A model generated the notes under the pieces. That model was not told the DNA's origin. It did no database searches and saw only the letters and a list, made by a program, of their open reading frames with translations. Source: Phallusia mammillata (lineage: Eukaryota). From it: a stretch of DNA of 64,000 nt. The stretch lies in assembly GCA_965637545.1 (NCBI GenBank), contig OZ281496.1:29202001-29266000 (forward strand), written 5' to 3'. This document shows positions 110-63,714 of this stretch, piece by piece; position 1 is the stretch's first letter, and the number at the start of each line of letters is the position of its first letter. The translations under genes and the position numbers were made by a program.

Positions 110-3100
110 CTGAACAACACACAGTTTGACGACATCTTTGCTTGGTATTTCTTGATCAATTGCGTTTGTGATTAGATTCAACTCAAATCTACGTTCTTCG
201 GTGTCTTTGAGAAGTTGATTATCCTCTCCGTGGCTTAAGATGACACAAATAAAACACAGGTCGCTGTCCAGGACGTTTTGACATTCTGCAAACATGTTTT
301 TATTAACCGTTAATATTTGACGATGTTTGAGACAAGGCCGCATTTGCAAACAAAATGGAGGACATATTACAAAGCGTTTTGTATATAAGAGTCGTCCTGA
401 CGAAATCTTTCGAAGGACATGCCCACATGATCTCTTCCAATTGTATTTGAAAATATTTCATATTACTGAAAGTGAACCCAACTCTATTGCGAAAAAACTT
501 GTTGCGACATGCGTTTTGTACATAGAGTCCCCCTGGCGAATTCTTTCGAAGGACATGCCCACATGATCTGTTCTAATTATGTATTTTAAAAGATTCCGTG
601 TAAGTAAAAGTGAACCCAACTATATTGCGAAAAACTTGTTGCGAAATACATTTAACTAATCCCCACCTTTTCACAAACGCACTCTATCATCAAATCAGCG
701 CACGTAAACTTTGGTCGGAAGGTTATAAACGAGCATAGTTGTGTTTTGTTCACCTGATCTTAAGCTTTTTATCATTTTGTCATAAGCTTGATTTTCAATC
801 ACATGACATTGCATGTTGAGATTTTCTGCAAGCTCCTGTAAACGTTCTACGTCTTTTTGGCTTCCATGCCGATCTTTAGAAACCAGGTATTTCTAAACAG
901 ATGTTAGTCACTTTGGGAGAAAAGCATGTGGCTTTGTGAACCTTTTTTGCAATAAAGTAGTCTATATTGCAGTGACTCTCTTTGATATTGTTTTCAAATC
1001 CGACCCAACAAATAATACTCAATCGTATAACAAATCACACCTTTGGCTAGTCTTTAACAGATAAGGGAACTTTTGTACATTTAGTGTTGTCTTTTAAATA
1101 TCAAGCTGTCTTAAAACTCTAAGACATGGACACGTTTTTTCCCAATGTACTACACATAAGTAACATACAGTATGAGGCTTCGCAATTCGTTTTTATTACT
1201 TTAGTACCCTCATAAAACCGTTTTAACGCAATTGGATAATCGAATGCCGGCCAAGCGAAGTACGGATTAGCAAGAAAGTATGCAATGTCAGTTACCAGTT
1301 CACACCCCACTTTATTTGTATCGAAAATTGCAAAAAAATGCAACGACTTTTAGTACCTCATTGTTAATAATAACCATCCTTCCCATTCCATCTCTTAACC
1401 ACCAGCTCTTCAAAATGCTGAAACAAACAGCTTAGTAAATTGTTTTGGTATTATCTTGATGTGTTGGGCACCTTTTGGATGGGAACTTCGACCAGATAGT
1501 TTCGGCAACGCAGCAAGGCAACTTTTGGTTTGAATTCGACCGTCCCGAAATCCACTTTAGAAAATTGTGACGAGCAATACGGCGATAGTCACTAAAATTG
1601 CAGAAAGGAAATGGTTTATTAAATATTTATCGCAACGCTGCGCGAAGCAGACGATTGCAACTAACTCGTTTGAGAGTTCTCATGGTAGCTTTATAGTGGA
1701 TTGTATGGTATGTCCTTAGAATTACTACTTTTTACCGTATTCATATCAATGGTTAGCCAAAAGTTATGCTATACTTTTTCATAGTCAAACTCAGTGTTTT
1801 TTTACAATAATCACTGTTTTAGGGCATAATGGTCATCGTGCGTCGCTAAAAACTGTTGTGAATCGTCAAAACATAAAACAGTTTGTATAAGGCATAAACT
1901 TGGCCAAATCGTCCAGGGCATCTCACCCTTATAAGTTACAGACATAAAGAAGGAAAGACGGGCAAAATGCAGACTTAAAATATTTACAACAACTGAGTAA
2001 GCTTCAAACATTCAAACAATAAACAAAATGTCTTACTCCTTGGTCAGCTCTGTTTTCCGCTGCTCATTGTCACTGTCTGATACAAACAGATAAACTTCAT
2101 TGAGACATAGATTCTGGAAGATTTGATGCTGCGTAATGCAAGTTATCTCCTGTTCAGCACCAAGTTGCTGCGAAATTTCTTCTACACTTTTGCAACACAA
2201 CTTGTGTTCATCAAACTGATCGCAATTACCACACAAACACCTGTAACACACAGCAAATAAATGCACAGAAAATATGTACTAAAAAGTTTAAATATAATGT
2301 TGACAATAGAGCAACCATTATATCATTTGAGACTTAAATTTGTTAAAGCAAATCAGCATGAAAATTATAATCAGAAATATCGTTGTTGTCCGTGATTGAT
2401 TAAAGTCTACAAGGGTATACAGCTCATTATACACGGGACCAACCTAGTTGCCATTGGATCAATTTAAATTCAAATCTATAATGAGACAATTTAGCACAAA
2501 AATCCAACCTGAAATTTAGTTGTAGTAATCCCATACTGGAGTCTAATCTGTACATGGTTATACAGTTAAAAACCAATTTTCTATGTATATGAAGCAGGAT
2601 CCCATAGCGATTTTACTATTAATCAGTGGTGGCATAGTGATATTAGCTTTGTTCTATGTCTTCCATAGAGCTATAGTGAGTACTTGGTGCAATGTTATGT
2701 GGTCAGTATAGATTTCTAATCAAGCCGTTGCTTGACTGTGCCTTGTGTTTATGGCCCTCGTAAAAGTGTTTGCGTAAACAATCTTTGTCACGTGTGTGGT
2801 CTACTGTACACTATTCAAACCTTTCAGGTGGAAACTCAGTTTCTATGCGTTCCTCGACACAGCAGGGCAAGCTTTTGTCGAGATTTCGTTTCCAAATCCA
2901 TTTCACGAAATTGCTGTGGGCAATGCGGCGATAATCACTAAAATAAAGAAGAGGGATGAAAAAAATCGAGAAGCGAACACAGCGTTTTATTATGTATTTT
3001 ATTACAGATGTTTTCAATGTATACATCAATGTAACAAATAAATATAATCAACATAGTATCTTAATCTGAGGTTGTAACGCCCTGGGCCTGTCAATCAGAC

Positions 3101-4099
3101 TTTCGGGCCTAAACGGGCTTTTCAAAAACGATTCGGGTTCGGGCCTGGCTCGGGCTCCAATTTCAGACCCGTTTACAACTCTGGTCCATTTATTCTGCAT
3201 AAAGGATGTAATGCTGAAATCGTTTTTATCATTTTATATCTTGATTTACTTCCTCTTATTCATGATTATTCTATGTTCTTAATAGCGAAATCGATATAAA
3301 CAAGAGTTTACAACAGTATATATACAGACTGATTCAAGTGAGCTGTTACAGCTGTGATACGTTCATTCATTAGGATTGAAAAGTAGCAGTTTCAGAAATG
3401 GCATTGGGCCACTTCATGTGAGAAGTGGTTATTGATTTCAAATGCGGGCCAACAACAAAAGGTCTAGAATTACTTGATCGAAAACAAGCTATTGTTAAAG
3501 ACTACCTCTAGACTTACTCGTTTGTAATCTCACACTCATTTTGATTATTGTTGCAGCAACTGGCAACAGACACGGCAAGAACAGCCCTTTTGAGGCACAC
3601 ATATTCGAAGTCAGCGTGGTGTGTTATGCAATCAAGGTTTGTTTTTGTTGCGATTTCTTCGGAGCTTTTGCAACAGAACTTGTTTGCTTCCAAATGGCTG
3701 CACTGTCCACAGATACACCTGCTAAAATCGTGCAAATCGTAACCTATGTCCCGAGAGTTTTGTGCATGGTTAAACCAAGTTATCAGGTCAGTAGAACAGA
3801 TACGTTAAATCCATACTTTGAAACTTTACAAGGTTTGGCTAGATTTGGAAACAACAGATAAACATAGTACATGCAAACAGGTTAAAGCTCAAAGAGGTTT
3901 GCTTAGATTTGGAAACAACACATAAACATGGGACATGGCCACAGCAAACAGCTTAAAGAATAGCAAATACATTCAGCCGCCTTATAAAATAGGGGCAATA
4001 TAATTACCTTTTAGCTTGGTCGTTAGCTACTTCATCCGAAACTTGGGCACTCCCTGTATGAGCTACGTTCAAATTCGATTCTTCTTCACTGTCACTCAT
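110..4099 (-). CDS. Gene A: double-ballast caspase family member, 5' part (continues off the left edge)
   Basis: Exons 4099-4008, 3721-3518, 2937-2821, 2240-2037, 1591-1472, 1417-1357, 892-754, 285-110 have GT-AG ends and compatible phases with no stop. Translation: MSDSEEESNL..., ballast 1 (CICGQC..FCC..CITHH..CL / YRRIAHSNFVKWI..LPCCV..IETEFP), ballast 2 (CLCGNC..LCC..CITQH / LPCCVAETIWSKFP), then caspase p20 (GRMVIINNE, DRHGSQKD, CVILSHG, KLCVVQ|). The ACRG exon would lie left of base 1. Confidence 0.87.
402..645. repeat. Imperfect direct duplication (~107 bp x2) in gene A intron
   Basis: TCTTTCGAAGGACATGCCCACATGATCT...AAAGTGAACCCAACT.TATTGCGAAAAA.CTTGTTGCGA occurs at ~402-508 and ~538-645. 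Confidence 0.85.
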
Positions 4100-7924: not shown

Positions 7925-10900
7925 CTATTTTCCATCCTTGGAAAACAAGACTTCACTTCTCAGCTGGGTTTGGGTCCATGGGACAGGATGTTTTTGATCT
8001 GTCATTTTTCGTCTCACCTTGGTCAGTATCTGATCGTAATGAATATTTACGAAAAAAAACGACAAAAATGGATATTTTTGGCGTTTAATTGAAAATGAAA
8101 ACATCGTTTACATCATTTATTGCTTTCAATACATTTTAATGTAATTCTACTAAAATGTCAAAAAGGTCAGTTTTACGCTGCCACAGTAAACAAACCTTGA
8201 ATAGATCGTAATGATCTTGGTCTTGGTCGTTGGTCACACAATGAAGCAGAGCATCGTAAAACGCAGAAATTCCCTTCTGTTTCTTGTTGTCCCTGAAATC
8301 TATACAAAAAAATCTTTAATGTTAACAAAGTTAACTTAAATTTACGAATAACATTAATGGCCGAATGCGAAAACAGGAATTGTCATTCGTCGTTAAGATT
8401 TTGAAATATAAATATATTTCACATTACCAGCTTTATGTGAAGACTTACGTCAGTCACTGCTGCGCCCTTTTTTATCTATCGTTTTTACGCAAAAGTGGAT
8501 ATAAATGAGTAACTGATGATGAGCATTTGCCGAAACGCTTAAGCAAAACAGCACTTTGTACGTCTACTTGGGCCGTTATTATTATCATTGAAGTCATGAA
8601 CGGATGCGTATGTAGTGTTCCAAATGATTCAAAGTTTTTTTTAAAAAAAAAACAACAACAACAACAACATATCAATAGCTACAAGATTCATTATAGTCTT
8701 TATCCACAAGGCAAGTAGTTGGGTGATTGTATTTTTAAGTTTGAAGTACAAGTGTTGTTAACTTATCTAAACAAGTAACAGAAGAATTATTTACATATTT
8801 TTTGCTGGTTCTGAAATTACGGCAAAAACGTTTAATGAATAAAAATAAATGAAAACCGTAGATACCTTCTTCAGAGAAGGTGATCATCACATCAGCGTCT
8901 GGGTGTTGAGGTAAATACCTATCTCCGTTTGATCCAATCGCGTCAGTTTCCACCACCGGAGGCTTCTATTGAAAAAGTATTTGTCAGCTCAATTGTCTGA
9001 AATAAAGTCCAACCTTTCATGGGTGTATCGCTGATAACATGTGCACCCTTTTTTGTAACAACATACCTTTTTCCAATGAAATAAATTTCTTATTTTATGT
9101 ATTAAACTTTTTTGCCATGAGAAAAAGAAGTTTGCCGCTTTTTAGCAAATAGGTAATCTTCTCTTTAAAAATTTTTACCTGTACGAAAAACAGTTTTGGC
9201 TGCCCTTTCAATGCGTCAGCAGGGCTTCTGCCATCGACCGAATCTTCACGAAACAGAGTTGTAATCTCTTTTAAGTTAAAACTGTCGTTGACATAGTTCA
9301 GATCGAATTTGTCCTTCGACTTTGTTTCAGATCTAATGGCGCACACGAAGCATGATATTGCGGTGAAGCCTCTCACATCTGCGAAATATATTTCCTTACA
9401 ATTTGTATGTAAACCTGTTCTTCGACAAGTAGGAAATAATTTATGCCGGTCTAATTTGTGTCATAGACTGCGAATAAATGTGATAAAGTGATTAAGACAT
9501 ACAAAGTAAAAATGTGTTGTCGTAATGAAATAAATCATTTTTATAAATACCAATTAAACATTTGCTCATGCAAAGGATGTTTTCAAAACTTATTTTGATA
9601 GTTTAGAATAATACGTATATCACCGACTTCGACCAGGTTGAAAAGTCTAGAATTAAAAAAAATACTTACAGCTCTCAATCTTGTTTAGTAAATCCACTTT
9701 ATTAAACTTAAATGTTTTAGTTTCTTGTCTGAGTTCAGAACATGGAGTTTTGATGTTGCTTTCTTTAAACCCCCACAACTTGGCCACGAGTCGGAGGGCG
9801 TTGATGTCTTCTTGAAATTTTCCCTTAACAATACAAACACAGTAACTGTTGAAAAACGTTTGGTAATGTAAAGTCAGATGGTTGGAATTAGTATACCTTG
9901 TGGCACAAATATTAAAACACCAGCATTAAATTACCTGATCCGCTACAATTACGAAAAGGCCACCCCTTTTCATATCTGTACTGTAAGTGGAAGGCCTGTT
10001 TAAGAAAAACAGTTAAAAGGTGCTGCTATTATTAGTACATTCAAGAAAACGCACGGAACAGTTTCAATTGTTGTTTTTAACTTGAGATGCAGTTCTTTTG
10101 TCAAGCGAGTTGTGCTGGAAGCTAACAATCTGTGCGGTTCGTTTTCGCGTTGTTCCATGTTGCGTTTCATGGCGGTTAGAGCCTATTCACCAGAAATATC
10201 ACGTACAAAAGACAATTTAAAACCAAAAGAAAGGAAATAACCTGCATGATTTCCAAGCCGTGTGATTGATTGAAACTTTTGCACAACTCATCAATAAATG
10301 GTGTACCCTTTGTTCGGTTACGAGTTCCTGCGTGACCTTAAAAATGTTTTGTACGTTTTAAACTCGGTTCTGTGTGACAAACTTACTTTTGACTTCTTTG
10401 TCGTATTTTGGTAATTGTTGTAATTACTACGCAATGGTAAAAAATCTCACTTAATAAAGCTCACCATAAACTGAGCAGTATGTGATCAAAAAGTTTTCAT
10501 CTCCCGGATCTTCGACATGTGACACATCCTCGTTTCTTACTGTAAAATTGTCTCCTCTACACGCCTAGGACATACACAACTTGGTTGTTAAATTATTTTC
10601 AAAAATTACTCGCATGGAACTGTTATTTGTTTGGACAAAGCTGATTTGCCACTATTTTAAGTTGGGTATCAATGCAAAACTTTTGTTTTACCGCATTTAT
10701 GTTTCAAAGCATTATTAAACCAAAGTAAATTAGGTTAAGCCTTTTTCATTGCAAACCATATCTGTTTTTTTCAATTTTGAATGCCCTCATTACTTGTTCA
10801 TGAAACATTTTAAACGAAATAAGGGATTTTTTTGATCAACCCATCCTTCGAATACTTACGTAACCAACATGTCAAAATTTACCTGCACAAAACACAGTTT

Positions 10901-13170
10901 TACCACATCTTTATGTACTATTTCTTTGTTTATTGTCGCTGTAATCCAGTTTAACTTGAATTTGTCTCCCTTGACATCTTCAAGAGTATGATTTTTTGCC
11001 CCATGGCTCAAAATGACACAGATAAAGCAAAGATCGCTGTGAATGACGTTTCTACACTCTGCAAATAGCAGATTATTAAGTTATTTATAAGAACCAAGCA
11101 TAAAAAAATAGACTGTTCTGCGTAAAAAATATTAAATAAGTCACGTTAAACCTGATCGCAGACGTGTAATGATGTCATCATAACCCTTGTTTTCAATCAC
11201 ACGACATTGGATGTTGAGATTGTCTGCAAGCTCCTTCAAACGTTCCACGTCTTTTTCACTCCCATGCCTATCATTTGATGCCAGGTATCTCTAATATACA
11301 TGGGAATCTTTGATTGATATGCGTTTTTAAATCTCTGCCAGCATTTCACGTTGTTTCTACTTATAACTAAAAAGTGTAAAATAGTTTTTTTTGTTAAATC
11401 TATACCTCGTTGTTAATGATAACCATAGTCCCAATTCCATCTCTCAACCAGTCGCTTTTTGAAATGCTAAAAAAACACCGCTTGGTAAAATTCTGAGTAA
11501 TTGACTTATTGTCACTCCAAACCTTTCAGATGGAAACTCTGACCAAATTTTTTCGAGTACACAGCAGGGCAACTTTTCGTTTGAATCGGTTTGTCCCCAA
11601 ATCCATCTCACAAAATTACGACGGGCAATACGGAGATAGTCACTAAATTGTAAAAAAATACGAGGTGCTTCGCTACTCTGCAAACTAAGTGTAAATTAAT
11701 GTAACTATAAATTTAGATGAGAATAAAAGAACTATTTTGAATCATTGATATCAACTACTTGGGTTCAGGCCCTTGAGATTACAGAAGTCGATAAAAGAGT
11801 AGCGGAACAAAATCGTTTGTACTGTCTTATTTGGCAATCTCGTGCATATGCAAGTTTTCTGTTGACATACTCATTTGTTAACTCTGTTTTGCGCTTTTCA
11901 TTGCCACTGCCACATGTAAAGAGATACACTTTTTTGAGGCAAAGATTCTTGAAGACGTCGTGCTGCGTAATGCATTCAAACTTCTCAAGTTGTTGTGAAA
12001 TTGCATCGACGTCATTGCAACATACAATTCGCTCGTATACGATGCACTGTCCACAAAGACATCTTCAATTTGCAATAAAATAGTTTAAGTGAACATAAAT
12101 CAATTAACAACTAATATGAAAGTTTAAGATGTTGTGACACCGACTGGCTGAGACAATAAAGAAACGCAGAAATTTAAAAAAAAATATAATTATAAAACCA
12201 TCACATGGTTCATTGTTTATTCCGGCCTCTGTGATTTACTCGTTAATCCTATAGGAACATCTGTAGTGTTGACACAATCGTGTATACCCAGTTTTCTGAT
12301 CCTTAAAAAGACCCGGGAATTACTTGTCTTTGTACAAGTTAGTATTTGATTCAAATTAAGTTCGTATATTTTCACAAACCTTCCAGGAAACGTTGAACCA
12401 ATGCTTTTTGTAACACAGGAAGGCAAATATCTGCGTTTCCCAATCCATTTTTGAAAATTGCTGTAAGCAATACGGCGATACTCGCTAAAAATGAGGATGG
12501 GTTAAAAAAGTTCAACGATAAATGACCAAACTTTTCTACTGTAGGCAGTCCCCATATATGAGTTTATTTTTGACGGAAATGTTTTAATGTCAAACTTACA
12601 TTGCTAAAGTAAACAGGATAAATGTATTTTGTTTGACTAACATTAAAAATCTTGTACCATCAACTTGAATTAGTTATATGTTTACTTACTCGTTCCCTAT
12701 CTCTTTGCTCTGACCATCGTTGTTTGTAACCTCCCTTGTCACGCTAAGAACATCTTTATTGAGACATACAGCTTTGAAATTAGTATGTTGTGTTATGCAC
12801 TCCGACCCCGATTTTGTTGAAATTTCCTCATCGTGTTTGCAGCACAACTTGTTTTTGTCATCAGTATTGCATTGCCCGCATGAGCACCTGTACAGATAAG
12901 TAATCCAATTTAACTAAATTTCCTCGCATAGTGGGAAAAAATGAGCTAATGGCAAGCTTCTTAACGAAAGCACCCATGGGCTACGGGTGTTTCAATACCA
13001 GAGCAATAATATGAATAATGACATCGAAAGAAACACAGGAAAGCTTATTACAAGGCATATACAAGTTATACTTACCAACTGGTTTGATCAAAAGTGGTTT
13101 CATCTAAAACCTGAACACATGTTGTTTGCTCGACATGCAAAGTGGATTCTACTTCCATGGAGTCACTCAT
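7925..13170 (-). CDS. Gene B: complete 17-exon ballast-ballast-caspase-pseudocaspase protein, 705 aa
   Basis: Exons 13170-13076, 12887-12690, 12484-12380, 12062-11871, 11642-11523, 11466-11406, 11290-11152, 11058-10883, 10564-10465, 10336-10242, 10182-10055, 9980-9935, 9823-9670, 9378-9179, 8965-8866, 8299-8196, 8029-7925. All GT-AG; total 2118 nt, open to TAG. Motifs: WCSCGQC..KLCC..CITQH..LPSCV; GTMVIINNE, DRHGSEKD, CVILSHG, FVQ|ACRG, GTRNRTKGTPFIDELC; second domain GLFVIVADQ, CAIRSE (no His), GQPKLFFVQ|KPP (no Cys), PWTQTQLR. Confidence 0.92.
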
Positions 13171-18500: not shown

Positions 18501-19869
18501 TGTTGTCAGATACAAAAATAAATTCCTTATCCAGACAAAGATCTCGAAACCTATGATGCTGCGTAATACAGCTAACCTCCGAGTTGGCAAGATGACTTGA
18601 AATTGCAGTCACCGCTTTGCAACACAGCTTACGTAAGTCAAACTGGTTGCAATGACCGCAAGAGCAACTGTAATGTGCAGAAAGTAAATCAAGTAAAAAA
18701 TAAGTGAGCAATAAATGCTGGCCCTGATGCTGTGTTAAAGTTTTAACGTATATGCTACGAATGTAGACCTTGGTTTTAATGTAATTTTACAAATTTAGTG
18801 CGTATAATTTATCTCAGCTTAACAGACTAATTGGTTGTCTACACGATGTATTCTGTATACACCACTACCTTGGCACTAATGTTTATGATTAAACTAATTG
18901 GTTGTAGACACATAACTATTTTGCCACACAAGCGACATACAGCGTGTTAAATCAAACCTTTCAGGAAACTTTGACTCAATACGTTTTTCGACACAGCAAG
19001 GCAACGCTTTGTTCACATTTGTTTGTTTCCAAATCCATTTTGCGAATTGGCTGTGAGCTATGCGACGATATTCACTGCAATTTAAAAAAGGCATGAAAAT
19101 CCAGTGACATAAAATATATTAAAATTTTCCAGTTTGTTTCGTTTAATGGTATCAATCATCTTCCAAAAGCTATATATTTTGAATAAAAAGATTCGTTTTA
19201 ATTCTATATGTGGAAAATAAGTTTGCCATCATATTTTAGAAGTGATCTCCAAACATACTCATTCGTTCTCTCCGTTTTGTGTTGGTTATTGCTGCTACTC
19301 ATGCCAGATATGAAAAGAACTGCTTTGTTGAGGCACACAGGTTCGAAGTCTGCATGGTGGGTTATGCACTGAAGTCCCGATGTTGCTTTAATCTCGTTCA
19401 CGCTTTTGCAACACACCATATTTTTCTCAGAATGAACGCATGCCCCACACAAACACCTCCTGCAAGAGTAGTATTAAATTCAACTAATTAAATAAACAAG
19501 GATAATTTAGTAAATCACTACTAGAAACTTATCTAAAGCGTTATTCTCGTTTATTCAAGAAACAATTTGCAAATGAGTCCCTATTTCGGATCATGGTTAT
19601 AAGGGATCACATGGATACATAATTTGCAACAGTTTTTAGGTTTCATTTTTGTATATTACATGCCTATAAAACGATAACGCCTCACTTTGCACAGCGTAAT
19701 TTTTTTTAAATAACATCTAGAAATCTTCTTGTGTATGTTGCGAAGCCTAACAAAAAGAAACTACAAAATACCACCCAGCCCGATCGTCAGTGCTGTCATC
19801 CGAAACTTGGGCACTTCCTGTCTGTGCGACGTTCATATAAGACTCTTCTTCTTCTTCGCTGTCAGACAT
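15501..19869 (-). CDS. Gene C: complete 17-exon ballast-ballast-caspase-pseudocaspase protein, ~709 aa
   Basis: Exons 19869-19772 (or -19775), 19459-19259, 19074-18958, 18667-18467, 18304-18185, 18128-18068, 17911-17773, 17617-17442, 17375-17276, 17155-17061, 16995-16883, 16820-16760, 16617-16488, 16330-16122, 16055-15956, 15825-15722, 15605-15501. Phases match gene B; open to TAG. ERKGSQRD, CVILSHG, FVQ|ACRG, GYRDIEKGSPFI; dead domain CAIISD, FFVQ|KQS, VETDA, PWTQTQLR. Confidence 0.92.
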
Positions 19870-25616: not shown

Positions 25617-25659
25617 AAGTTCCTTACGTCTGTAAATATATCGTAAAAGTAAGCTAAAT

Positions 25660-30794: not shown

Positions 30795-30854
30795 TTAGTA
30801 CCGCATTTGTTGTTGTCAAAAAGTACTCGAAGTTCTCGGTCATTTTGTTTCGAA

Positions 30855-51083: not shown

Positions 51084-51818
51084 ATGGAGAATATTACTGT
51101 CAGAGGCAGCCACAGAATGACTAATACTGAAACAAGTGATGCAGGTGAACCAACATTACGAGACGTTTTCAACCTCATGCAATGAATGGACAGGCGCTTG
51201 ACCTCAATCGAAAACGACCTGAAGGAACGCGTCGGTGAGGCAGAAACAAGCCTCGAGGTTGCACACCATCGAATTGACGAGCTCGAGAGCAAAGTAGCTT
51301 CGCTTGAAACTGACCTAAAGGAAACTAAGGTTAAATTGAATCAAAAGCGCATTGTGGACGAAATGCGTTCCAAAGAATTTAACCTGCTGATTCATGGCAT
51401 ACCTCAACTGCTATCTACTGAGTCACCTGGCCAAACCGAACACGTCTTAAGAACGTTCATAACGGAAAAACTGCAGTATTCTTCCTCTGAACTTGCTAAT
51501 ATACAGTTTAGCAATATTCACCGCCTGCCGCGGCGTACGTCAACAATCAGTGGAGACAAAGATTTATCTAAACCAGCCCCAATAGTTATCAAGTTTGTCA
51601 AGATGTCGGACAAAAGAAAGATTTTTTCTTGTTCCGGTCGCGCTCGGTCCTTTAATGCAAACATAACAAGGCATCTACCTGCTTCTATGCAGGCTCAAAG
51701 AAAGGAATTAATTCGCCATGCTAACAAATTCTACAATCAGGGAAAAACTGTCAAATGGCAAATTATTGAAGCTGATTATTGTCTTTTTGTTAATGGTAAA
51801 AAGTTTACAGATTTTTAG
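51084..51818 (+). pseudogene. LINE ORF1 (coiled coil + L1-like RRM) with one premature stop
   Basis: Heptad-like LTSIENDLKERVGEAETSLE...; RSKEFNLLIHGIP, IHRL, PIVIKF motifs. In-frame TGA at 51183-51185 between ATG 51084 and the listed ORF at 51186. Confidence 0.8.
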
Positions 51819-51835
51819 TTATTTATGTTGTTTAA

Positions 51836-54800
51836 ATGGATCGACCTGGTGATGGTCTAGCGCTTTTTCACATCAATGCTCGAAGCATTTTCGCTCATAA
51901 CAGTTCTTCCAAACTAGATGAACTGCATTTTATAGCATTAAATCGTGGTTTCGACATTGTCTGCGTGACTGAAACATGGCTTGATTCAAGTGTTTCTAAC
52001 GAACGTCTGATCATTGACGGTTTTCAGTTTCCTTTAAGAAAGGACAGAAATAGGCACGGTGGCGGGGTGTTGGCGTATGTACGCAATGATATTCGCTGCG
52101 TACGCTTGTATGATCACGAGTCTGCCGATTGCGAGTTGATGTGGCTGGAAATTACCATGGTTCCCGATTGTCGACCAATAATAATTTGCGTTGGATACCA
52201 ACCTCCTAATTATAACAAAACCTCCAAAGATATTTTTTCCGCAAAATTATGTTCTAAAACTTACAATTGATTCGTTACAGCAAACCACCAAATGCGTTAT
52301 TATTGTAGGCGATTTTAATGAGCCCCACGCAACTATCTTTACGCAACTAATAGACCAACCAACCGCAACTAATAGACCAACCAACCAGATTTAGTAACAT
52401 TCTAGACACGATTTTAGTAAACGCACCCGAGTGTGTATTGTCATCTGGGGTACTACCACCACTTGCAAATCTGGATCACTGTGCTATTTATGTTACACTT
52501 AATTTATCTCGTGGCGCTCTCCCCAATCACGTGTTTTACAAATGGATTTTCGCCAAAGGTGATTTTGAATCTTTAAACAATATTTTCATCGCGTATCCAT
52601 GGGATGATTTGGTTGCAAGCTCATCCTCTGTTGACATGGCCCTAAACAACATTACAGATGTTGTTAACCAGACGTGCAAAACGTATATTCCACTCCGTTC
52701 TTTTAGGCTAACAGCGAAATGTAAGCCATGGATGAATCGCGAAATTAAACACCTGTTTCGAAAGCGACATCGCTGGTTTACCAGATGGAGAAATTCTGGT
52801 GATTTACAGCACAAATTACAATACAACAAACTTAGAAACGAAATCCAACGCAAAATTAAGAACGCAAAAGCTAAATATCATGCGCATATTGTTAACGAAG
52901 CCTGCTTATCTAAACCTTCTTCTAAGAGGTTTTGGTCGCTCACACGTAAAATCCTGAATACCAACGAAGATACCTACAACAGCAAAAGTACGCCAAGCCT
53001 TGTTTATAACGGAGTAACGTATGTTAATGACTTCGAGAAAGCAAATCTCCTAAATCAACATTTCGCCTCCATTTCCACACTCCCTTCAAATCTGCTTTCA
53101 CTGTCTTTTCCTCCTTCTTCCTTCCAGCTTAGCCTATCCACACCTTCTCTTGACATTACCCCGTGGGATGTTTACCGCGTATTACGTAAACTTGACCCTA
53201 GTAAATCTTCTGATCCGCTAAATCTTCCTAATCACATTCTAAAACAATGTGCAGAGTCCATTCAGCTATTTATTTAATTATATTATATCCGTGGGTATCT
53301 TTCCGTCAGAGTGGAAAAAGCTACAATAATCCCACTGCACAAATCTGGACCAAAACATGATGTAAAAAATTATCGACCAGTTTCGCTCCTACCCTCCCTA
53401 TCAAAGGTTTTTGAAAAAATTCTCCACAAACACATGATTACTTATTTAGAATCGAATAAACTTCTGAACCCCAACAATTCCGGATTTCGCCAAAATCATT
53501 CAACCATCACCAATCTGCTTCACACAACCCACAATATTTACGCTTGTCGTGACCAACGCATTGATTGTCGAATAGTTTTTCTTGATATCTCCAAAGCTTT
53601 TGATCGTGTTTTGCACCACGGTTTGCTTCATAAGTTACAACAAATTGGGATAAATGGCAGTTTGCTTCCTCTACTAAAATCGTACTTAACTGGTCGTGTA
53701 CAACAAGTTCGCCTGAACAACAATCTTTCAACCTTACAGCCTACTAATGCCGGGGTCCCACAAGGTTCAATTTTAGGTCCCTTGCTTTTCTTGATTTATG
53801 TTAATGACATCTTCAATAACTTAACCTCTAACATTTCACTTTTTGCTGACGACACTGCCCTTTATTATTCGGATAAATCTCCAAATCAACTTCAAAAAAT
53901 TTTACAGCGAGATCTCAACCACCTCGACAAATGGGCTTCCACTTGGGCAATTAACTTTAATTCCTCCAAATCTAAAGTACTATCGCTTTGTAAAAGTTCA
54001 AATTTTCCTCAAATTTTATTCAAAGGTGTAGCTCTTCCTGAAACCCGTGCACATACGTATTTAGGCCTTGTATTTACACCAACACTTTCCTGGCACGACC
54101 CCATTCGGTACATATGCCATAAAGCACAAATCAAAGTTAACCGATTGCGCAAAGTATCTAACATAGTCTCCCGGCATATCATCCTGACCCTTTATAGGTC
54201 CTGCGTTCTTCCTACACTTGAATATGGCGATATTGTATTTGATAACTGCAACCTCTCTGACTGTGAATTACTAGAAAATGTGCAACACCAATCGGCTAAA
54301 CTAATTTTAGGGTGTATGAGGACAACCTCGTATAATAAAATATTACAGGACCTTGGTTTGACACCCCTCCGTGTTCGTCGCAACGTTCACTCTCTCGTTC
54401 AATTTCACAAAATTCTCAATCGCATAGGACCATCATATTTACAAAACTGCATTCCTGAATACATCAAAAATTCAGTTAAACATGACTTGCGTAACCCCCT
54501 AAAAATCCATCCCATTGCGTGCCGCAGAAATACCAAATTCAACTCATTTTTTCCCAAAACTATCCGATTATGCAATGATCTCCCAAAAGAAATTCGATCG
54601 ATAAAATCTGTTTCAGTTTTCAAAAATAAGGTTAAAAACTTTTCTTTACGAATCGGGTCAGAACCTTGCATCTGTATGGCTCTTGTCCTAGGACGACTGC
54701 CCTTCATTGCATGCTTCGACTTAACCATAGCCCACTCAATATCAATCCTAGGCACTTTCGTCCTTGTGCTTGTCAGGCCGTAGAAGCCACGCAACATTTG

Positions 54801-55393: not shown

Positions 55394-55482
55394 CTTAAAC
55401 TAGTCGTAATATTCTTGATGCCTATCAGATGCAACACATTGAAGCAACGCTTCATAAAATGCAGATATACCTTCTCTGGATG
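55394..55482 (-). pseudogene. Fragment F': partial penultimate exon of an F-type copy with nonsense codon
   Basis: GISAFYEALLQCVASDRHQEYYD*FK|GT versus gene F GISAFYDALLQCVASDGHQEYYDLFK. Confidence 0.8.
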
Positions 55483-56513
55483 GTCCTCGCGTATTTTTTA
55501 ATGTTGTACGTCCGGCCATGAAAATGGTTTGGTGACCCCAGCTCTGTTTCGCCTCAAAGCGTCATGCGCCGCGTGTGTGTTACGCACAATGATAATTTGT
55601 CGCCAACACACTTCTACAAATATGATCTTTTATTTCCTGTTTTTTGACACGATGCTTAGGATTAGATGCAAGATAAACAAATTGATTACAAAATAACAGA
55701 GGACTTTCTGTGTTATCCATTACAAATTGAAAAAAAACTACACTTTACTCATGGTTAAAAACGACTACACGTCTACTTGTTAAATCGTCACTAAATTAAA
55801 CATAACTAACACATTTGCAATAAGCATGAACGCCAAGAGGGGAGAAGATTTGACAAATTACATGGATAAATTACGATTATGCAATTGTATACATGTATAA
55901 AATTATACAGCGCATTGGCGTTGCCTAAAACCTAAATAACTCTACAATGTAAAAAACACGTTATCACGAGTAGCTCTTTTGTCTGTCCGATGCCCTCTAT
56001 TGCCCTAACGTGCTAGCGCCCATGAACCTTTGCAGACTATGTATCCGAAGTTAACAAACACAACAACAGAAGTTTTCCACACAGATTATGTATATTTACA
56101 AATTTACAAACAATACATTAACAATTTTTTTACTTGAAGAAATATATAGATGAAAACACATATCACGGACCAGTTTGTAAAATAGCAAAGACACATGTCT
56201 AAAACGTTTTCTTCTGATATGATAACTAAATCAAAGCAAAACTAACATATTTGCAAAGCACATGAACCTGTAGAGATTAAAGAGTATTTTACAAATTACG
56301 GGCATACCAACTGACTTTTTATACAGATTAGAATTTTTTACAAGCCTTACAAACATCAACAAATTTTACTTGTGGATAAAAACTTATATCAAGGCAAAAT
56401 AGCTAAGACTACATGTCTACAAAAACTGTTCAATGTCAGTACAATGCATAAAATCTATCGGTTTTGGTTTTGCCCGTAGTTGATTTTTGCCTATTGTTAC
56501 ACCTTGTAGCAAT

Positions 56514-58103
56514 TTAGACAGCCTTAGGCTTGTCAAAACAAACTTCTTTCCTCAACTGGGTTTGGGTCCAGGGAACCGGTTGCTCTTGATCTGCCATTCT
56601 CTTTCTCACTTGTGTCAGTATCTGTTCATGAAGACCACAAAGACGGTGTAAAAATAATACAGTCGTGAAAACAGAATTAATCTCAGTTTCGTTTTTTTGA
56701 AAAAGATTATTATGAACGACTTTTAGATTATCATGGTTTGTACACAAACCTTAAATACATCGTAATATTCCGGGTGTTGGTCGTTGGTAACACAATGAAG
56801 AAGAGCGTCATAGAAAGCTGTTATTCGTTTTCCGTCTTGCCTGTCAACCAAACCTAAACGATACAGAAACAAAATAGTAACACTCAACATACTTTTAAGG
56901 ACTAGGGAGCGCTAAAAACCTCTTTCTCTTTTGTTCTTTTACTTTACACTAAATCACACCTTCAGTTCGTATAATTTTATGAACAAAAGTAACAAACCTC
57001 CTTTGGAGAAAGTGATCATAACATCAGCGTCTGGGTGATGAGGCAAATACTCGTTCGCGTCTGATCCAGTAACGTCAGCCACCACCAACGATTGTTGTTT
57101 CTAATCATTTTCATTGGGTAATTATACGATAATGAGTTTATGTGACAGCTACAGTATTAAAAGTTTAAACGTGTCAAGTACAAAAAAAGTTTTCAACATT
57201 TATTTCCTTTCGACTCATTTGAAGCATGTTGCTTTTCACAACTGGTTTGGCAAGAACAGCGGGTGTCAAACTGGAGTCTGTGGTCCCTGCAGAATGTTTG
57301 AATATAGCAGCAAGATTGGTTTTCAAGGAGTAGCTTAGAACTCGAAAGCTTGAGTTTTTTTGAAAAAGTTAGAAACCAAAGGCTAGTATTTATCTTTTGT
57401 AAGTCGTTTCTGTTCTTACTTGTACAAAGAACAACTTTGGTTGCCCTCTCAATGCATGTGCTGGGCTTCCAACCTTATCTAAACCAGGGGAGTATTTACC
57501 GCGAAACAGAGTTGTAATCTCCTTCAAGTCGAAAGTGTCGTTTTCATAGTTTAGTTTAAATTGTTTATCTCCGTTTGTGTCAGATATAATAACGCACACC
57601 AAGCATGAAATGGCTTGGAAGTTCTTTACGTCTGTGAAATATATGAAACCAGGATATATATTTTAACCATAAGTAATCCCTTACAATAAGTTGCCAAACA
57701 TTTTTGCAGGCCTGGTTTTTGTTGCTAACAGCTCTTCTGAAAAATACCTCAATGCTCATTTTGGTTTGCAAGTTCACAAACCCAGTTTTTGCCGCAAAAA
57801 CAAAAACAAATTGAGGAACTATTCAATATACCTATTTTTCTTTTTTGTTGCGTTTGTTTAAAATAAGGTCTTTTCCGGATTTAGTGCTAGAGTAAGTATT
57901 TTGTCATGTTCATGTTTGGAAATATATGGAAACAAATACTTACAACTGGCAATCTTGTTCACTAAATCTGTTTTCGTCAACTTAAAATTCCCAGGATGCG
58001 CATCTTCTCTCAGTTCCAAGCATGGTGTTTTAATGTTGTTTTCATCAAACCCCCACAATTTAGCAATTTGTCGAAGGGCAAGAACGTCCTCATTAAATTT
58101 GTT
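56514..58103 (-). pseudogene. Fragment G: last five exons only (pseudocaspase domain), D-like, reading frame open
   Basis: Exons 58103-57944, 57631-57420, 57100-56998, 56853-56750, 56621-56514; GT-AG, in phase, no stops. Upstream 58104-61500 contains no ballast or active-caspase exons. 3' flank 55535-56514 closely matches D's flank 20800-21780. Confidence 0.82.
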
Positions 58104-61100
58104 CTAAAGTGTATTGATGAGTTTCTGCTTTTTGGGGATTTGATTGGGTGCAAATGCCTAGGTATTTTAATCCAGGGGTTGACAGCCTCTTGAACGCACC
58201 GTGCCAAAATACTAGTTATTATAAAATGATAATAACTTAGCGTGCCAACTTGTTTGTTGGTAATGTTAGTTCACCTAATATTAGGAGATAAGTCGAACCA
58301 AAGCATAACACAATGCGACAGTTAGTGACAGGCTTTGTTACTAACAAGTCGAGTGTTGATTCAATCGCGCCTCAGATTGTTCTGGGTGTGTCTGTTTCTG
58401 TTCGGAAAATATTAAGTTAATGTTTTATTGTCACTGCAACTGTATTGTCACAACCAACCAATCTACAAACTATGACACTGTTACATAAATCCCATTGAGA
58501 AAATCAAATAACCTCGTAACTAAGAAGCATTTCGGGCTACCAACGCTCAAAGCAAACTATAGCACCCCAATCTAATACTAGGAGAAAATTCCTGAACCTG
58601 AGCGTGACGCAATACAACAGTCAGTGACAGGCTTTGTTACATACAAGTCGAGCGTTAATTCGATCGCGCCTCCGGTTTTAAGATTTTAAGGTTAAAAAAC
58701 AGTCTCGAACTTAAAATGATCTTCCTGTCAAGTCTGTTATTCTGGGTGTGTCTGTTTCTGTAGTTATAAAATCATTGGTTGAAACGCAACAAGTTAGAAA
58801 CCTAGAACAAACCGCTGCGGCTATACCCTGGGAGGAATAGTAGGGCTTATTTGCTAAAGTGTGAAACTCGGGTTTCGCCCAGCAGTAAACCAAAGTGTTT
58901 GCTAACGACCACCTGTCTGTGTGATTTGGGGAAATTCTTAATTTCTATCTCCACTGAATAACTTCAAGCTATAGCCAATACACTTTCTATCTAAACAACT
59001 TTCTTTGCGCAATCTGAGCTAACTGAATGACTGGATTTCGCGGATGGTTGGCTTTCGAACAGGCCAGAACTATGGCGCATCACGTCGCGACTTTATATGG
59101 TCACCTTACTACGCGGAACTCCAAATGTGAAACATTGGCAGAACTGAAATTTGATTCCCACCAAACACGTTCAACCCGAACACTCTTCATTGTAACCTTT
59201 TTAATTGACAGTGCATTTTGATCCGACTTGGCGAAGCGAGCAGGTTTTATTTACGTTTGGCAAAATTTAACCTCACTTTAAACGTTGTTGCGGGTTTGAT
59301 AAGTTTGCTTTATTTAACAGTCGGCTCTTGGTACTGTTGAGCTTTTTGCATGACTTATCTGTGTCTTATATGTCACCTATAAACCTTGGTATTTGACAAG
59401 GTGTTCATTAATTGGATGCTAAGTTTTCTTTTTATATTATTTCATTCCTTCTGTGCCGCTTTACTGAAATTTTAATCAGATGATAATACAGTGATCGACA
59501 TTAAATGCAGTTTAATATGTCTATTGGACGAGTGTTCAAATTTGATATCTCAGTTTATTTAAACATTGGGTTCATTCTATATCCTTTCGTAAACCCTTCG
59601 CTGTAAGAACACAAATTTCTGAACTAAATTGACAAACCTTAGCTTACACCTAAAGATAAGCATGCTAATTATTTGTTATTGATGTAATGGGCAGTTTAGT
59701 AACTAAGCAATGCAACAAAAACTTCCGCACCAGGTCAAATACGCATTGTTCGCGACATGGCCTTGGCACCATATTTTATTTTTGCTACTTGTCAAGCGCA
59801 GAAGCTTAAGGTATGTTGCTAACGTTACACCGTCAGCCAACATTTAGAACAAACAAACATATGGTTTCAGCGAAAAACTGTTTCGTCTCTATGTTGATTT
59901 GACTGTGACGTTAGATGAAACGTCAGTTCCGCAACGCTGCACCATTTACTGTAATATGCTTCTTAAACCGGAACCACAAATCTGCATAGTTTTATGCGTC
60001 ACCTCATATTTTCCATGCTGAGTAAATGATAAATATAGAACATGGAATTCCTGTTTAATCCCAAACAACTGGCTATGCTCTGGTGCGTTGGATTAAATAA
60101 CCAATAATTTAACAAGCCACAGCGAATGTTTTGCCTTTTTACCTATCTACAAGGTTTCATTACCCTGTATATTATTGCACTGCACTTAATGCGACTTAGC
60201 AATGAGTTTTATTTTATTCCACACAACTGACTGTTCTTTTGCTTGTTAGAGTGAATAACAGATAATTTACCGGTTCACATTATAAAATCACACTGCATCT
60301 TGTTACGTTACACAGTGGTAGTAGCCTATAGAATTAAGTAAACGATTATTGAGAATGCTGTCCAATCTGGCTTATTGATCACATCTATCACGCTGACAAA
60401 AATTGTACCACTTTGTATGACGACTGTTTGGTTCGGTAATGACCGTATCATTAAGATGCATGCAGTGGTCGCGTGAACAGATTAAAAATAACATACAGTA
60501 TCTGTAGCGACAATACCATTACGTATTTGCGTTCCTTAAAAATCATACTACACGACTGCACACTTAAACAAACTAAATATAAAAATACTGAAAATAGCAT
60601 ATTGCAGTAATGGCAAATATGTTGGCATAAAAGTTTATAAAATAATGTTTGGTTTTGTGTTTTCGAATGCATCCAGTGTATTTCGGCGCCTAAACAACGT
60701 TTGTTTCTACTGCTCGTTGGCTTGGGATTTCGTAGTGGACCATGTGCTACAATGCTTTAGTTAATGGTGTATTATTTACTTACTCTGGAGAGTATACGTA
60801 AAGTAATAATCGTCAGCTATCACAGATCAGCTGTTAGTTTGTATTTTACGAACTTTTAGTTGATTACTGCATAGTAGTTGGTTAAGATCGGGTTGTAAAT
60901 GAGGCAACCTAGCGTTCGCATTAGAAATTCGACGGCAATGGGTTGTTTTGAAGATAAACAAAGTTTTTTTGCTGCTAGCAACAAAGCTGAAATTGCTTGC
61001 CAGTTTGAACACAAATGTTTTCGTTGCATACCAAAACACTGACATTGTTTTCTCGTGAATGTTAAACAAAGTGGCAAAGTTTCTGCTTGTATTGTTTTTT

Positions 61101-61515
61101 AAACAAGAAAAGTGTAGAAAGTGTTACTTAACAGACTTTGTACTTTTGATTTCAGAATTGGCGATAAGATAGGGACACTTGTTAAGCATATTCAGTGGAG
61201 TCTCACGTTTGGTACCTCAACAAAAACAGGTGGATAGACTAATATTTTGTAAAACGCTTCAGTAAATGTTGACGTCTGTTTTGCCAGCGAAAAGATTCTT
61301 TACATAAAAAATTTTGAGATAGACCATTGTCGTCATTTGCATATGGTAAGGCTAATACAAAACTAAATTGATGTGCTTTTTGACGGAAAATATATGCAAC
61401 TGTCTTTGAAAACTTATATTAATTTATTTGGAGTCGACATTGTGGTAAAAAACGAACAGATTGATTGAAGAAAAACAATTTATATGCACATGTTAAATGT
61501 ATTAAAACGTTTTCA

Positions 61516-63714
61516 TCATTCTTCAGTTATTGGTCCAGATTTTGGAAATCGAATTTCTTTTCTCAGCTGCGTCTGTGTCCAGGGAACGTCCTTATTATCT
61601 TCCTTCATTAGTTTTCTAACTTTGGTGAGTATCTAAACAATTAAATCTAAATGTTCAATCACCAGAATAAAATTTAGCCTAAATTATGTTGCATCATTGA
61701 ACACTTATCAAAAGACGTCTTTACCCATCCCTTTATTTCCCACATGTAGTTTTCTTTCAGTTCTACTCAAAATAGTTTATATCTACACGTTCCCTTCGAA
61801 ATACCTTATTGTTTTCCTTAATAGTTTTGCCCTTCTCGAAAATCACTGTATAATTTTCGAACTAGACTGGAAAGAAAAAGTTTGGCTTAGTGGGCAGAGC
61901 GACACCTATCGATAAGCGTTCAATATCAAATTCAACACTAGGTTATGTTTTGATGGCACAAGCCTTGCCTAAAACCTTGAAATGAGCACGCCTGTTCTAC
62001 AATATTAATGCTTTACGGGATCTGTCTCTTTTATAGTAGGTAAGTTGATGTCTTCCACGATCACTGAAGCATACTGTTTACAGTTTTTAGAGACTGACGA
62101 TGCCTGCATAGGAATAAATCCGCTTAAACGGGTGTGTGGGGACCTATTCGTTTTTGCTTGCAAAAAAATCATATGTGTAGTTTAAATGATGTGTATAGTA
62201 AATATCTAACAATGATTGTGCCCTATTTTTACTGTTACCAAATCGCATATGCATATGTGTGGGGACCCATTAGATTATGCTTGCAGAAACAATTATGTTA
62301 TAAAATGCCAGGAAAAAGATAGGGACCCAATGAAATGTAGGTGCCAAATATATATCCATTATAAATATAGTAAATTGTATATGTGATACATCGTTAAATA
62401 TGATGTAGTATATATAAACTGGCAATATATAGGAAAACAACTATTCTAGTTTTTAACAACTTCTTGTGTGCTGATTTTAAATGAGAAGCATTTGCATCTT
62501 TATTGTTACTTACTGTTGTACATTACTGTACAGTACAATTACCTTAAACAAGTCGTAATATTCTTGATGCCCATCAGATGCAACACATTGAAGCAACGCG
62601 TCATAAAATGCAGATATGCCCTCTCTGGTTGGATTGTTTCCCAATCCTGAAACAATACAAGACTCTTTCAGTGATTAAAACTTTCAGTGACCTGTTAATG
62701 TTTACTTGCAACGAAATGCCAAATTATATCTTTCGTTTTTAGCAACGAAAATGGAACAGTCTTTTCTCTGTCACTTATTGACGTTTACCTGCTGACGAAA
62801 ACGTGATTAAAACATCTGCATCCGGATGGTGGTAAGTTTCATTAGATTCCAGGTTATCTTTAATAGGATCGGTTGTCCATTGCACATTTGATTTCTAGTG
62901 AAGCAAAAACACTCTTTGGCGTTATATTTTCTATGATATATGTTAAAATATAATTACATGTTTAGCAAAACTAAAAGGATGATTTAGGGGATATCGCCAG
63001 TTTAAATTAACGTACACCAAGCCTATTAGAGGCGTTATAACGAATCAAGCAGTCACCCAAGCATACCTAAGCTTAAATGGCAAGGCATTGTCTCAACTAA
63101 ACAAATCCAGCGTTGGGATCGGAAACCACGCTAGGCCTGGTCAGTTACCAACGCTACTTCGATTGTAAGCCCTCCTGATTGTCACAAGTACCATTGCTAG
63201 TCGTATGTGCAGCACATTTTAGCGATCTTTAATGCAGCGGTCGGCAACTGTCGGTCCGGGAGGAGTTCGTTACCCGGCTGTGTTCGTAACTTATTTATGT
63301 GTTTTCATTGATAAATATTTATAGTTCATTTTTTTGGAGGCCGGTCCTCGATAAAACTTTGGTTAAAAAAACGGTCCACAGTGCAAAAAAGGTTGCCGCC
63401 GGTCCGACCATTCCCCTATAACTACGAATGATGATTCATTATTTAACGTGGCTGTAGGTGTATTTTACGAATTACCAGTTGTTTCGTTCCTACACTTTCT
63501 TTTTATTACACGTTTGCGTTTACATGTTTTCTTACCTGAACAAAAAACAACTTTGGTTTCCCGCACCATTGTGCGCTTCCTCGCACCAATGAAGTCACTT
63601 CGCTAAGGTTGTAAGTTTCCTTTTCGTGTTCAAGAACAAACTTGTCGTGTTTATTGTCGTCCGATATAATGGCACACACAAAACAGGATTTGTCTTCACA
63701 ATTATCCTGCACAT
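61516..63714 (-). CDS. Gene F: 3' part (pseudocaspase exons) of an E-like family member; 5' part beyond the right edge
   Basis: Exons 63714-63536, 62894-62789, 62646-62543, 61632-61516, open. CFVCAIISDD, GKPKLFFVQ|KSN, HPDADVLITFS, GISAFYDALL, PWTQTQLRKEIRFPKSGPITEE*. Upstream domains are inferred from paralogs only. Confidence 0.85.

Follow-up and report, generated by a model that had tools for sequence, protein, structure and literature searches.

Of the described systems that come close to the locus reported here, one resembles its enzyme part and another its prodomain. The first is caspase-X of the coral Acropora, in which a live and a dead caspase domain are carried by one chain; its genes have been expanded in tandem and the protein has been tested in cells, where the killing of HeLa cells rose when the dead domain was removed (PMC4715348, PMC7783167). 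A pairing of the dead domain with the live one, comparable to that of c-FLIP with caspase-8, has been proposed. The second is the ZCD of the P2X7 ballast and of nanor-like proteins (PF20478; PTHR36981; PMC7016195), with the consensus PxWCxCx2C; LCCRx3GxCITT; (L/I/V)PSC(C/S)x3IRx2(F/Y)Px5Y(S/T)G. The ZCD proteins that have been surveyed are short, the ZCD is always C-terminal and it is almost never joined to another domain (PMC7016195).

We have analyzed a stretch of 64,000 nt of the ascidian Phallusia mammillata (contig OZ281496.1 of assembly GCA_965637545.1, without any N), which we refer to as the window. Recurring exon families in a fixed order were found by an all-against-all comparison of the open segments of the minus strand, and splice-aware gene models were then built with junctions picked by a phase-guided choice. 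The introns of the paralogues also resemble each other, and for this reason a BLAST-core splice search missed many junctions. An earlier note on this DNA had claimed at least nine copies or fragments on the minus strand sharing one exon plan, and the models, with nine copies or fragments, agree with both the count and the plan: an acidic leader is followed by one or two Cys-rich modules, a caspase with the His/Cys dyad, and a caspase-like domain with neither residue. We think that they probably represent a real, old and lineage-restricted family of composite caspases in this ascidian. The open genes and their parts, taken from the splice-aware models, are the following.

110-4099, minus strand: gene A, 8 exons; leader, ZCD-like modules 1 and 2 and the first three caspase-1 exons, to '...CVVQ'
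7925-13170, minus strand: gene B, 17 exons, 710 aa; canonical splice sites, no internal stop
13170-13076, minus strand: gene B, leader
12887-12380 and 12062-11523, minus strand: gene B, the two ZCD-like modules
11466-10055, minus strand: gene B, active caspase
9995-9935, minus strand: gene B, exon X2
9823-7925, minus strand: gene B, dead caspase
15501-19875, minus strand: gene C, 17 exons, 711 aa; every intron GT-AG, no stop
19875-19772, minus strand: gene C, leader
19459-18958, minus strand: gene C, ZCD-like module 1
18667-18185, minus strand: gene C, ZCD-like module 2
18128-16883, minus strand: gene C, active caspase (SHG, QACRG)
16820-15501, minus strand: gene C, dead caspase
34590-40083, minus strand: gene E, 14 exons, 583 aa open, one ZCD-like module
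41125-41010, minus strand: gene E, candidate first exon (leader), with a weak donor
40083-39550, minus strand: gene E, ZCD-like module
39100-36722, minus strand: gene E, active caspase
36595-36541, minus strand: gene E, exon X2
36405-34590, minus strand: gene E, dead caspase
61516-63714, minus strand: gene G1, last four dead-caspase exons, 168 aa open, its 5' part lying beyond the end of the window

The three genes that had been described as complete and open (B, C and E, the last with an uncertain leader) are so in our models, but their lengths change from 705, ~709 and 612 aa to 710, 711 and 583 aa plus leader, and an extra exon, X2, has to be added. This exon ('GGLFVIVxDQ') sits between the two caspase domains and was detected via a protein of Phallusia (P0001). 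Genes A and G1 are open genes cut by the ends of the window; A runs past the window start and is open over 370 aa with no stop. All the introns of the rebuilt open genes are GT-AG. Gene G1 is the closest match in the window to A0A6F9DG42 of Phallusia mammillata (80-90% identity in three of its four exons and 60% in the second).

Automatic annotation sometimes fuses tandem caspase genes, and the composite chain might be an artefact of this kind, with a separate small ZCD gene, or two neighboring caspase genes, only seeming to be joined. Databases do hold predictions with multiple caspase domains that may be fused models (P0004 from a snail and P0005 from a goby). However, the introns at both domain joints of A, B and C, i.e., between the last Cys-rich exon and the first caspase exon and between caspase 1 and exon X2, measure only 54-62 nt, which leaves no room for separate transcription units. 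Across five paralogues separated by a dS of about 1, compatible splice phases have been maintained, and the exons that open a caspase start at an acceptor in a continuing frame, with no stop ending the preceding exon. One reading frame in five paralogues runs from the Cys-rich module(s) through the active caspase to the dead one, as had been proposed. The junctions flanking the Cys-rich modules are all in phase 2, so that modules could be gained or lost in frame.

Relatives of these genes occur as transcript-derived entries of Phallusia mammillata, and one of them bears directly on the artefact explanation. P0001 unites the two caspase domains, from the QACRG exon through the last dead-domain exon, in one ORF joined exactly at the predicted junctions, and gene E is colinear with its residues 249-601 (419 bits). 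P0001 is itself a chimeric model, in which an inositol-phosphate-kinase N-terminus has been joined at the QACRG exon boundary, and because of this 5' end it gives imperfect support for the transcript structure. A protein search with its residues 250-602 added no member to the family, the matches being ordinary caspases 28-35% identical to it, and there is no contig on record encoding the second relative, P0002. RNA-labelled runs gave no support to any exon: they contained hardly any of the words of 10301-20300, and in the comparison of four such runs with 34500-40400 (gene E) only an intronic repeat (37820-38650) was covered, although these runs are small and in contig form and a lack of matches in them does not show silence. 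Taking both sides together, we regard a gene-model artefact as distinctly unlikely.

The first caspase domain of the family carries 'ILSHG' and 'Q|ACRG' in B, C and E, the latter motif being split by a phase-0 intron. Gene A carries the SHG exon, while gene D (see below) has both motifs with the QACRG-bearing exon frameshifted. When the profile of the SHG exon was compared with solved structures, 125 caspase sequences were matched at the catalytic His, the best at 4.8e-5 (caspase-6), and residues ~246-459 of the spliced gene B model matched the caspase-3-like protein of Ciona and other caspases at 1e-17 to 1e-19. The alignment with the Ciona caspase-3-like protein and P0005 indicates an intact S1 pocket, formed by the R in '(D/E)R(H/K)G', the Q of QACRG and the R in 'TRN/YRD/FRH'. 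Domain 1 is a caspase domain with all catalytic and S1-pocket positions in place.

The second domain lacks the dyad. In B, C, E, G1 and P0001 there is a D/E at the His position, a 'FFVQK...' without Cys takes the place of QACRG, and the first pocket Arg is missing as well. The profile of a dead-domain exon matched 129 caspase sequences among solved structures (best 3.5e-8). Against 1.84 billion proteins the dead-domain profile retrieved two clear relatives, both from Phallusia mammillata; the weaker matches that followed were short caspase fragments and proteins with several caspase domains from other animals, and no coral sequence was among the matches. Pfam Peptidase_C14 matches both relatives, over residues 422-589 in P0001 and with 25.9 bits in P0002. 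When residues 360-602 of P0001 were folded with AlphaFold (pLDDT 79.7, pTM 0.81), the model resembled caspase-7, -3, -8 and -6 with TM values of 0.64-0.76 and a best E of 5.6e-12 (caspase-7), values to be read knowing that the folding alignment contained true caspases and so favours a caspase fold. Sequence family and fold both place domain 2 among the caspases, as a domain that has lost the His, the Cys and the first pocket Arg. An Asp site (VETD/A) is kept in the dead domain of B and C at the place of the intersubunit linker.

The nature of the Cys-rich modules is less straightforward. The earlier note had taken them for a ballast-like prodomain, and P2RX7_C (PF20478) was indeed the only Pfam family matched by the trimmed Cys-rich exons, in collinear order, but every exon, scored one by one, stayed below the cut-off of 23.5 bits. 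Five of the eight first exons matched profile positions 82-125 and two of the eight second exons positions 145-184, with best single-exon scores of 14.5 bits (positions 82-125) and 16.3 bits (148-184). The two exons of module 1 of gene C matched positions 82-123 and 145-183 with 10.7 and 15.8 bits, which sum to 26.5. Untrimmed, the open segments of single exons yielded nothing of use against Pfam. CxC(G/Q)xC, CC and CIT are invariant in the eight first exons and LP(C/S)C...I...F is found in all eight second exons; the motifs CxCxxC, CC...CIT and LPCCVx3Ix3FP, together with an R..A...F..W stretch, fit the published ZCD consensus (PMC7016195). The departures from it are a longer CC-to-CIT spacer, the absence of the 'IR' Arg and the absence of the Y(S/T)G tail.

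The same CxC...CC pattern might have arisen convergently in some other small zinc finger, for example a SWIM-like one. Besides the sub-threshold scores and the missing terminal Y(S/T)G, the modules have no Arg at the position of R578, and no P2X7 chain was matched among solved structures by the profiles of either Cys-rich exon at E up to 10. With a Cys-rich exon profile, a word-indexed search of proteins found two short unnamed ones with no Pfam label, and the AlphaFold model of one Cys-rich exon (pLDDT 52.7) was too poor for a fold search. SWIM fingers did appear in a language-model atlas search with one Cys-rich exon, as weak clusters at 0.90-0.92, but they shared only 139-148 of 256 protein features, fewer than true members of a family typically do, and were treated as unreliable. 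Against convergence stand the seven exon matches, which all go to a single family and lie at collinear positions of its profile, the summed score of the two pieces of one module, and the fit of the three Cys clusters and the R..A...F..W stretch to the consensus. Another type of finger seems unlikely to us, and as far as their motifs and profile matches can tell, the Cys-rich modules most likely belong to the P2RX7_C family, as ZCD/'ballast' domains in a truncated form.

The remaining copies are broken or partial and, with the retroelement and repeats associated with them, occupy the following positions.

21783-31354, minus strand: gene D, pseudogene with one ZCD-like module, from DNA alignments with B, C and E
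23108-25720, minus strand: retroelement ORF inside gene D, 871 aa open; RVT_1, E 4.5e-34
30687-30794, minus strand: isolated fragment like the last exon ('ILxxKxR...PWTxTQLRK')
44377-49743, minus strand: two tandem 2.7-kb units, 99.3% alike, each with an orphan acidic leader exon
55403-55561, minus strand: isolated fragment like the dead-caspase 'GISAFY(D/E)ALL' exon
56517-58103, minus strand: copy G2, five dead-caspase exons (C2a-C2e) only, each open

Gene D is broken in several places: the QACRG-bearing exon has lost 7 bp near 27016, the frame of the first Cys-rich exon changes at the A-run 28395-28405, and exon X2 has a GC donor. The reverse-transcriptase element abuts the start of the exon with the dead-caspase His position, its ORF lying directly upstream of exon 23092-22877. 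Upstream of G2 we found no X2, active-caspase or Cys-rich exons, and over 1.7 kb its 3' part is a duplicate (87.7%) of the 3' part of gene D. At 44-50 kb the orphan leader exons, in the open segments 44662-44892 and 47347-47577, lack a GT at the usual donor place; the units containing them are ~90% like the unit around the leader of gene D (30936-33049). The mixture of intact, diverged and dead copies described previously is thus borne out, with A, B, C, E and G1 open, D a pseudogene, and G2 and the two fragments partial.

Such debris, and the lack of support in the RNA-labelled runs, could mean that the array is mostly decaying and that one or two ancestral genes have left behind unexpressed remnants. 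However, A, B, C, E and G1 are without stop or frameshift over 168-711 codons, and the dN/dS values between B and C were 0.40 and 0.26 for the two Cys-rich modules, 0.16 for the live domain and 0.21 for the dead one. At a dS of about 1 such values are not expected of neutral decay: all the domains, the dead one included, are under purifying selection. The transcript-derived relatives in Phallusia mammillata also count against decay, which we consider very improbable. At the level of domains, the comparison of B and C gave no sign of diversifying selection.

With a family of composite caspases as the preferred reading, we can compare it with the known systems. Like Acropora caspase-X, each chain has one competent and one dead domain (His and Cys lost) and the genes have expanded via tandem duplication. 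Unlike it, the order is live then dead, the reverse of the coral one, the host is a chordate and not a cnidarian, and a Cys-rich ZCD-like prodomain is absent from the description of the coral protein in its source paper. The resemblance is likely to be due to convergence. With vertebrate caspase-8/c-FLIP(L) the family would share, by analogy, the partnering of a live caspase by a pseudo-caspase without dyad, and the Asp site of the B and C dead domains is in the corresponding linker; the vertebrate partners, however, are two polypeptides recruited through tandem DEDs, whereas the ascidian protein is a single chain without DED or CARD. Caspases-3, -6 and -7 and the Ciona caspase-3-like protein are the best sequence and fold matches for both domains, but they have one caspase domain and a short prodomain, and identity is only ~20-30%. 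The modules share with the P2X7 ballast and nanor-like ZCD the three Cys clusters (CxCxxC; CC...CIT; LP(S/C)C...I...FP), but they are N-terminal, single or double, and fused to an enzyme, being followed by ~460 aa of caspase domains; they end right after 'FP', and the position of the GDP-contacting R578 is E/W/G/Q/I. The architecture had been put forward as an unrecognized one. Two C14 domains, one of them dead, were already known in a single chain from the coral; our literature search found no published ballast/ZCD module fused to a caspase, and what is new is a prodomain of zinc modules, the placing of the live domain before the dead one, and the occurrence in a chordate.

The proteins may work as follows. 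Each gene, arisen via tandem duplication, would encode one cytosolic chain made of an acidic leader, one or two Cys-rich modules, a live caspase and a dead caspase. Coral caspase-X and caspase-8/c-FLIP(L) suggest, by analogy, that the dead domain could dimerize with the live domain as its built-in partner and so set its activity or hold it back. The Cys-rich modules would replace CARD or DED as regulatory or recruiting prodomain. We infer that the genes are expressed, that the two domains pair within the molecule, that the modules bind zinc and that there is some role in cell death or immunity. The one indication of immunity is the pattern of the cluster. Immune families often combine tandem expansion with gene death, as does coral caspase-X, which has been linked to stress (PMC7783167), but the proteins might instead serve developmental or homeostatic cell removal (metamorphosis, tunic, blood-cell turnover). 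Apoptosis is a well-known part of metamorphosis and regeneration in ascidians, and the absence of diversifying selection at the domain level would also fit; we see this developmental role as a serious possibility, a little short of an even chance. A bolder reading, which we hold to be rather unlikely, is that the ballast/ZCD is an ancient death-signalling or sensing domain and the ZCD-caspase-pseudocaspase of ascidians a new self-contained class of initiator caspase, in which ZCD clustering or the sensing of a ligand or zinc activates a pre-paired live/dead caspase. Taken as a 'Rosetta stone', the fusion would then also hint at what the poorly understood ballast of the vertebrate P2X7 connects to.

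Urochordates have been reported to lack caspase-9 and Apaf-1 (PMC10959488), which raises the question of how their caspases are switched on. The present family, with its prodomain that is neither CARD nor DED and its built-in dead partner, offers a concrete candidate. With a live/dead design in a single chain, it would have arrived at the caspase-8/c-FLIP logic for a second time after coral caspase-X, and probably independently. The probable fusion of a ZCD to an enzyme of known activity provides a handle on the function of the ballast module, that of P2X7 included.

In this array of Phallusia mammillata, the genome sequence gives good support to an architecture in which ZCD-like modules (the ZCD being the ballast domain of the P2X7 C-terminus, Pfam P2RX7_C) precede a live and then a dead caspase domain. 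The window is AT-rich (35–41% GC) and has zero N. Its minus strand was translated into stop-free segments, and their comparison, all against all, revealed recurring segment families in a constant order throughout. Splice models were built with the conserved intron phases as guide, and they (those listed here and gene D, discussed later) give nine copies or fragments, in agreement with the at least nine claimed in an earlier note.

19875-15501, minus strand: gene C, 17 exons, introns GT-AG only, 711-aa open frame
13170-7925, minus strand: gene B, 17 exons, 710 aa
40083-34590, minus strand: gene E, 14 exons, 583 aa plus an unsettled first exon
4099-110, minus strand: gene A, 370 aa open, continuing past the window start
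63714-61516, minus strand: gene G1, 168 aa open, 5' part outside the window end
58103-56517, minus strand: G2, second caspase domain only (its five exons, C2a-C2e)
55403-55561 and 30687-30794, minus strand: single-exon fragments

A leader-like candidate for the first exon of gene E (41125-41010) has an in-phase donor that is only weak. The exon plan of the earlier note was right as to the recurring order, but one exon had been overlooked: X2 ('GGLFVIVxDQ'), a short exon between both caspase domains that opens the second one, was revealed by the Phallusia mammillata protein P0001 and is found in B, C, D and E.

The first caspase domain has 'ILSHG' and a 'Q|ACRG' interrupted by a phase-0 intron, and when aligned with a Ciona caspase-3-like protein and a second true caspase it shows all three pocket residues (Arg, Gln, Arg). 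A profile of the His-bearing exon, built directly on window sequence, matched 125 solved caspase sequences at the catalytic His (best 4.8e-5, caspase-6), and the spliced models aligned with caspases at 1e-17 to 1e-19. The second domain is a pseudo-caspase: in the alignment D or E stands at the His position, 'FFVQ' is not followed by Cys, and the first pocket Arg is missing. The profile of its largest exon matched 129 solved caspase sequences with the whole exon covered (best 3.5e-8). Against 1.84 billion representative proteins the second-domain exon profile gave 12 matches, the two clear ones being the Phallusia entries A0A6F9DG42 (P0001) and A0A6F9D7S5 (P0002), and the weaker ones multi-caspase-domain proteins of hagfish, snail and goby, then short caspase fragments. 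The third-best match, behind both Phallusia entries, is a protein of Myxine glutinosa (P0003, UniRef UPI00358E3A6E) with two repeated caspase-like domains, both without His and Cys ('LLCEF', 'FIQEKEP'). Pfam Peptidase_C14 spans the second domain in P0001 (residues 422-589) and is above the cut-off in P0002. The AlphaFold model of P0001 residues 360-602 (pLDDT 79.7, pTM 0.81) matched caspase-7, -3, -8 and -6 with E ~1e-11 and TM 0.64-0.76, the model being biased towards the caspase fold since its input alignment contained true caspases. At the caspase intersubunit cleavage-site position, 'VETD/A' is kept in B and C and absent in E and G1.

Evidence for one chain comes from the short introns at the domain joints: in A, B and C the final Cys-rich exon is separated from the first caspase exon by 54-56 nt, and in B, C and D 58-62 nt lie between the live caspase's last exon and X2. 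Intron phases also agree at each joint across five paralogues whose divergence has reached dS ~1. In P0001 a single reading frame covers the QACRG exon and all that follows up to the end of the dead domain, and it aligns colinearly with gene E (419 bits). A public entry annotated as inositol hexakisphosphate kinase, P0001 is chimeric: residues 1-240 belong to an inositol-phosphate kinase, and the switch, which falls precisely on the QACRG exon boundary, leads into the back half of a live caspase followed by a complete dead one. Being chimeric at the 5' end, it is useful but imperfect evidence for the joined caspase domains. Next to none of the words of 10301-20300 were found in RNA-labelled runs, and four such runs over 34500-40400 covered only the intronic repeat 37820-38650; since these are small data sets in contig form, silence of the genes is not implied. 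This repeat, located in an intron of gene E, is present as hundreds of contigs, 90-99% alike and with many loose ends, in all four RNA-labelled runs, which suggests a dispersed element that is abundant and possibly transcribed.

Each Cys-rich module is made of two exons, with two modules in A, B and C and one in D and E. All flanking junctions are phase 2, so that modules could be gained or lost in frame. P2RX7_C was the sole Pfam family matched by these exons in an exon-by-exon scan. Five of the eight first exons aligned at its positions 82-125 (best 14.5 bits) and two of the eight second exons at positions 145-184 (best 16.3 bits), below the 23.5-bit cut-off in both cases; the scores of both exons of module 1 of gene C total 26.5 bits, a rough sum and no test. 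The invariant residues match the published ZCD consensus (CxCxxC, CC...CIT, R..A...F..W and LP(S/C)C...I...FP), and judged from sequence the modules are likely to be ballast/ZCD domains. However, they end directly after 'FP', without the Y(S/T)G tail of the ZCD, and carry E, W, G, Q or I at the position of the GDP-contacting R578 of P2X7. The profiles of either exon did not find P2X7 among solved structures. These three points count against full ZCD membership.

Between B and C (dS ~1), the two Cys-rich modules have dN/dS values of 0.40 and 0.26, and the live and dead caspases 0.16 and 0.21; comparisons of A with B or C and of E with G1 gave similar values. The low dN/dS of the dead domain indicates that it is held by selection and is not decaying; no domain-wide diversifying selection was seen from dN/dS between paralogues. 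The nearest database proteins are P0001 and P0002, with 60-90% identity per exon to the window genes, as would fit paralogues of those genes or their counterparts in a close relative. There are two subtypes, A/B/C/D/G2 and E/G1, each with a Phallusia counterpart, and therefore the family is older than the split from those counterparts.

Gene D is a pseudogene. Its QACRG-bearing exon has lost 7 bp near 27016, the frame changes at the A-run 28395-28405, exon X2 has GC as its donor, and a reverse-transcriptase ORF of 871 aa (23108-25720) adjoins the next exon. Recent turnover in the array is visible in the likeness of the 3' part of D to that of G2 (87.7%) and in a 2.7-kb tandem duplication at 44377-49743, with 99.3% identity between units. 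Each unit has an orphan acidic leader exon without GT at the usual donor place, and the unit recurs (~90% alike) around the leader of D, at 30936-33049. An 880-bp non-coding stretch occurs twice with 85% identity, at 43469-44345 and 60494-61346, once directly 3' of the leader-exon repeats and once directly 3' of the last exon of G1, and may be the trace of an earlier unit of duplication. Between G2 and these repeats lies a LINE-like retroelement (51186-54780, plus strand) in four consecutive open pieces, of which that of 501 aa contains RVT_1 (E 5.2e-39), that of 144 aa is similar to the Exo_endo_phos endonuclease (24.0 bits, slightly short of the 24.5-bit cut-off), and those of 210 and 307 aa have no Pfam match.

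The earlier note proposed the architecture as a candidate for an undescribed system, which is only partly borne out. In a literature search that left much subscription literature outside its scope, no paper was found on a ZCD-caspase fusion, nor on double-domain caspases in tunicates, but chains that combine a live with a dead caspase domain are already known as a class, the caspase-X of Acropora, modelled as an internal c-FLIP/caspase-8-like pair, in which removal of the dead domain led to stronger killing of HeLa cells (PMC4715348) and which expanded by tandem duplication (PMC7783167). The domain order there is dead then live (PMC4715348), whereas in the window genes it is live then dead. 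The ZCD/ballast module has been described as ancient; the proteins reported to carry it are short, and in them it always sits at the C-terminus and hardly ever accompanies another domain (PMC7016195). Caspase-9 and Apaf-1 have been reported absent from urochordates (PMC10959488). By analogy, we suggest that the dead domain would be a built-in partner of the live domain, which may either activate or restrain the protease in a function that may be immune, stress-related or developmental, and that the Cys-rich modules may be a regulatory or recruiting prodomain, replacing CARD/DED.
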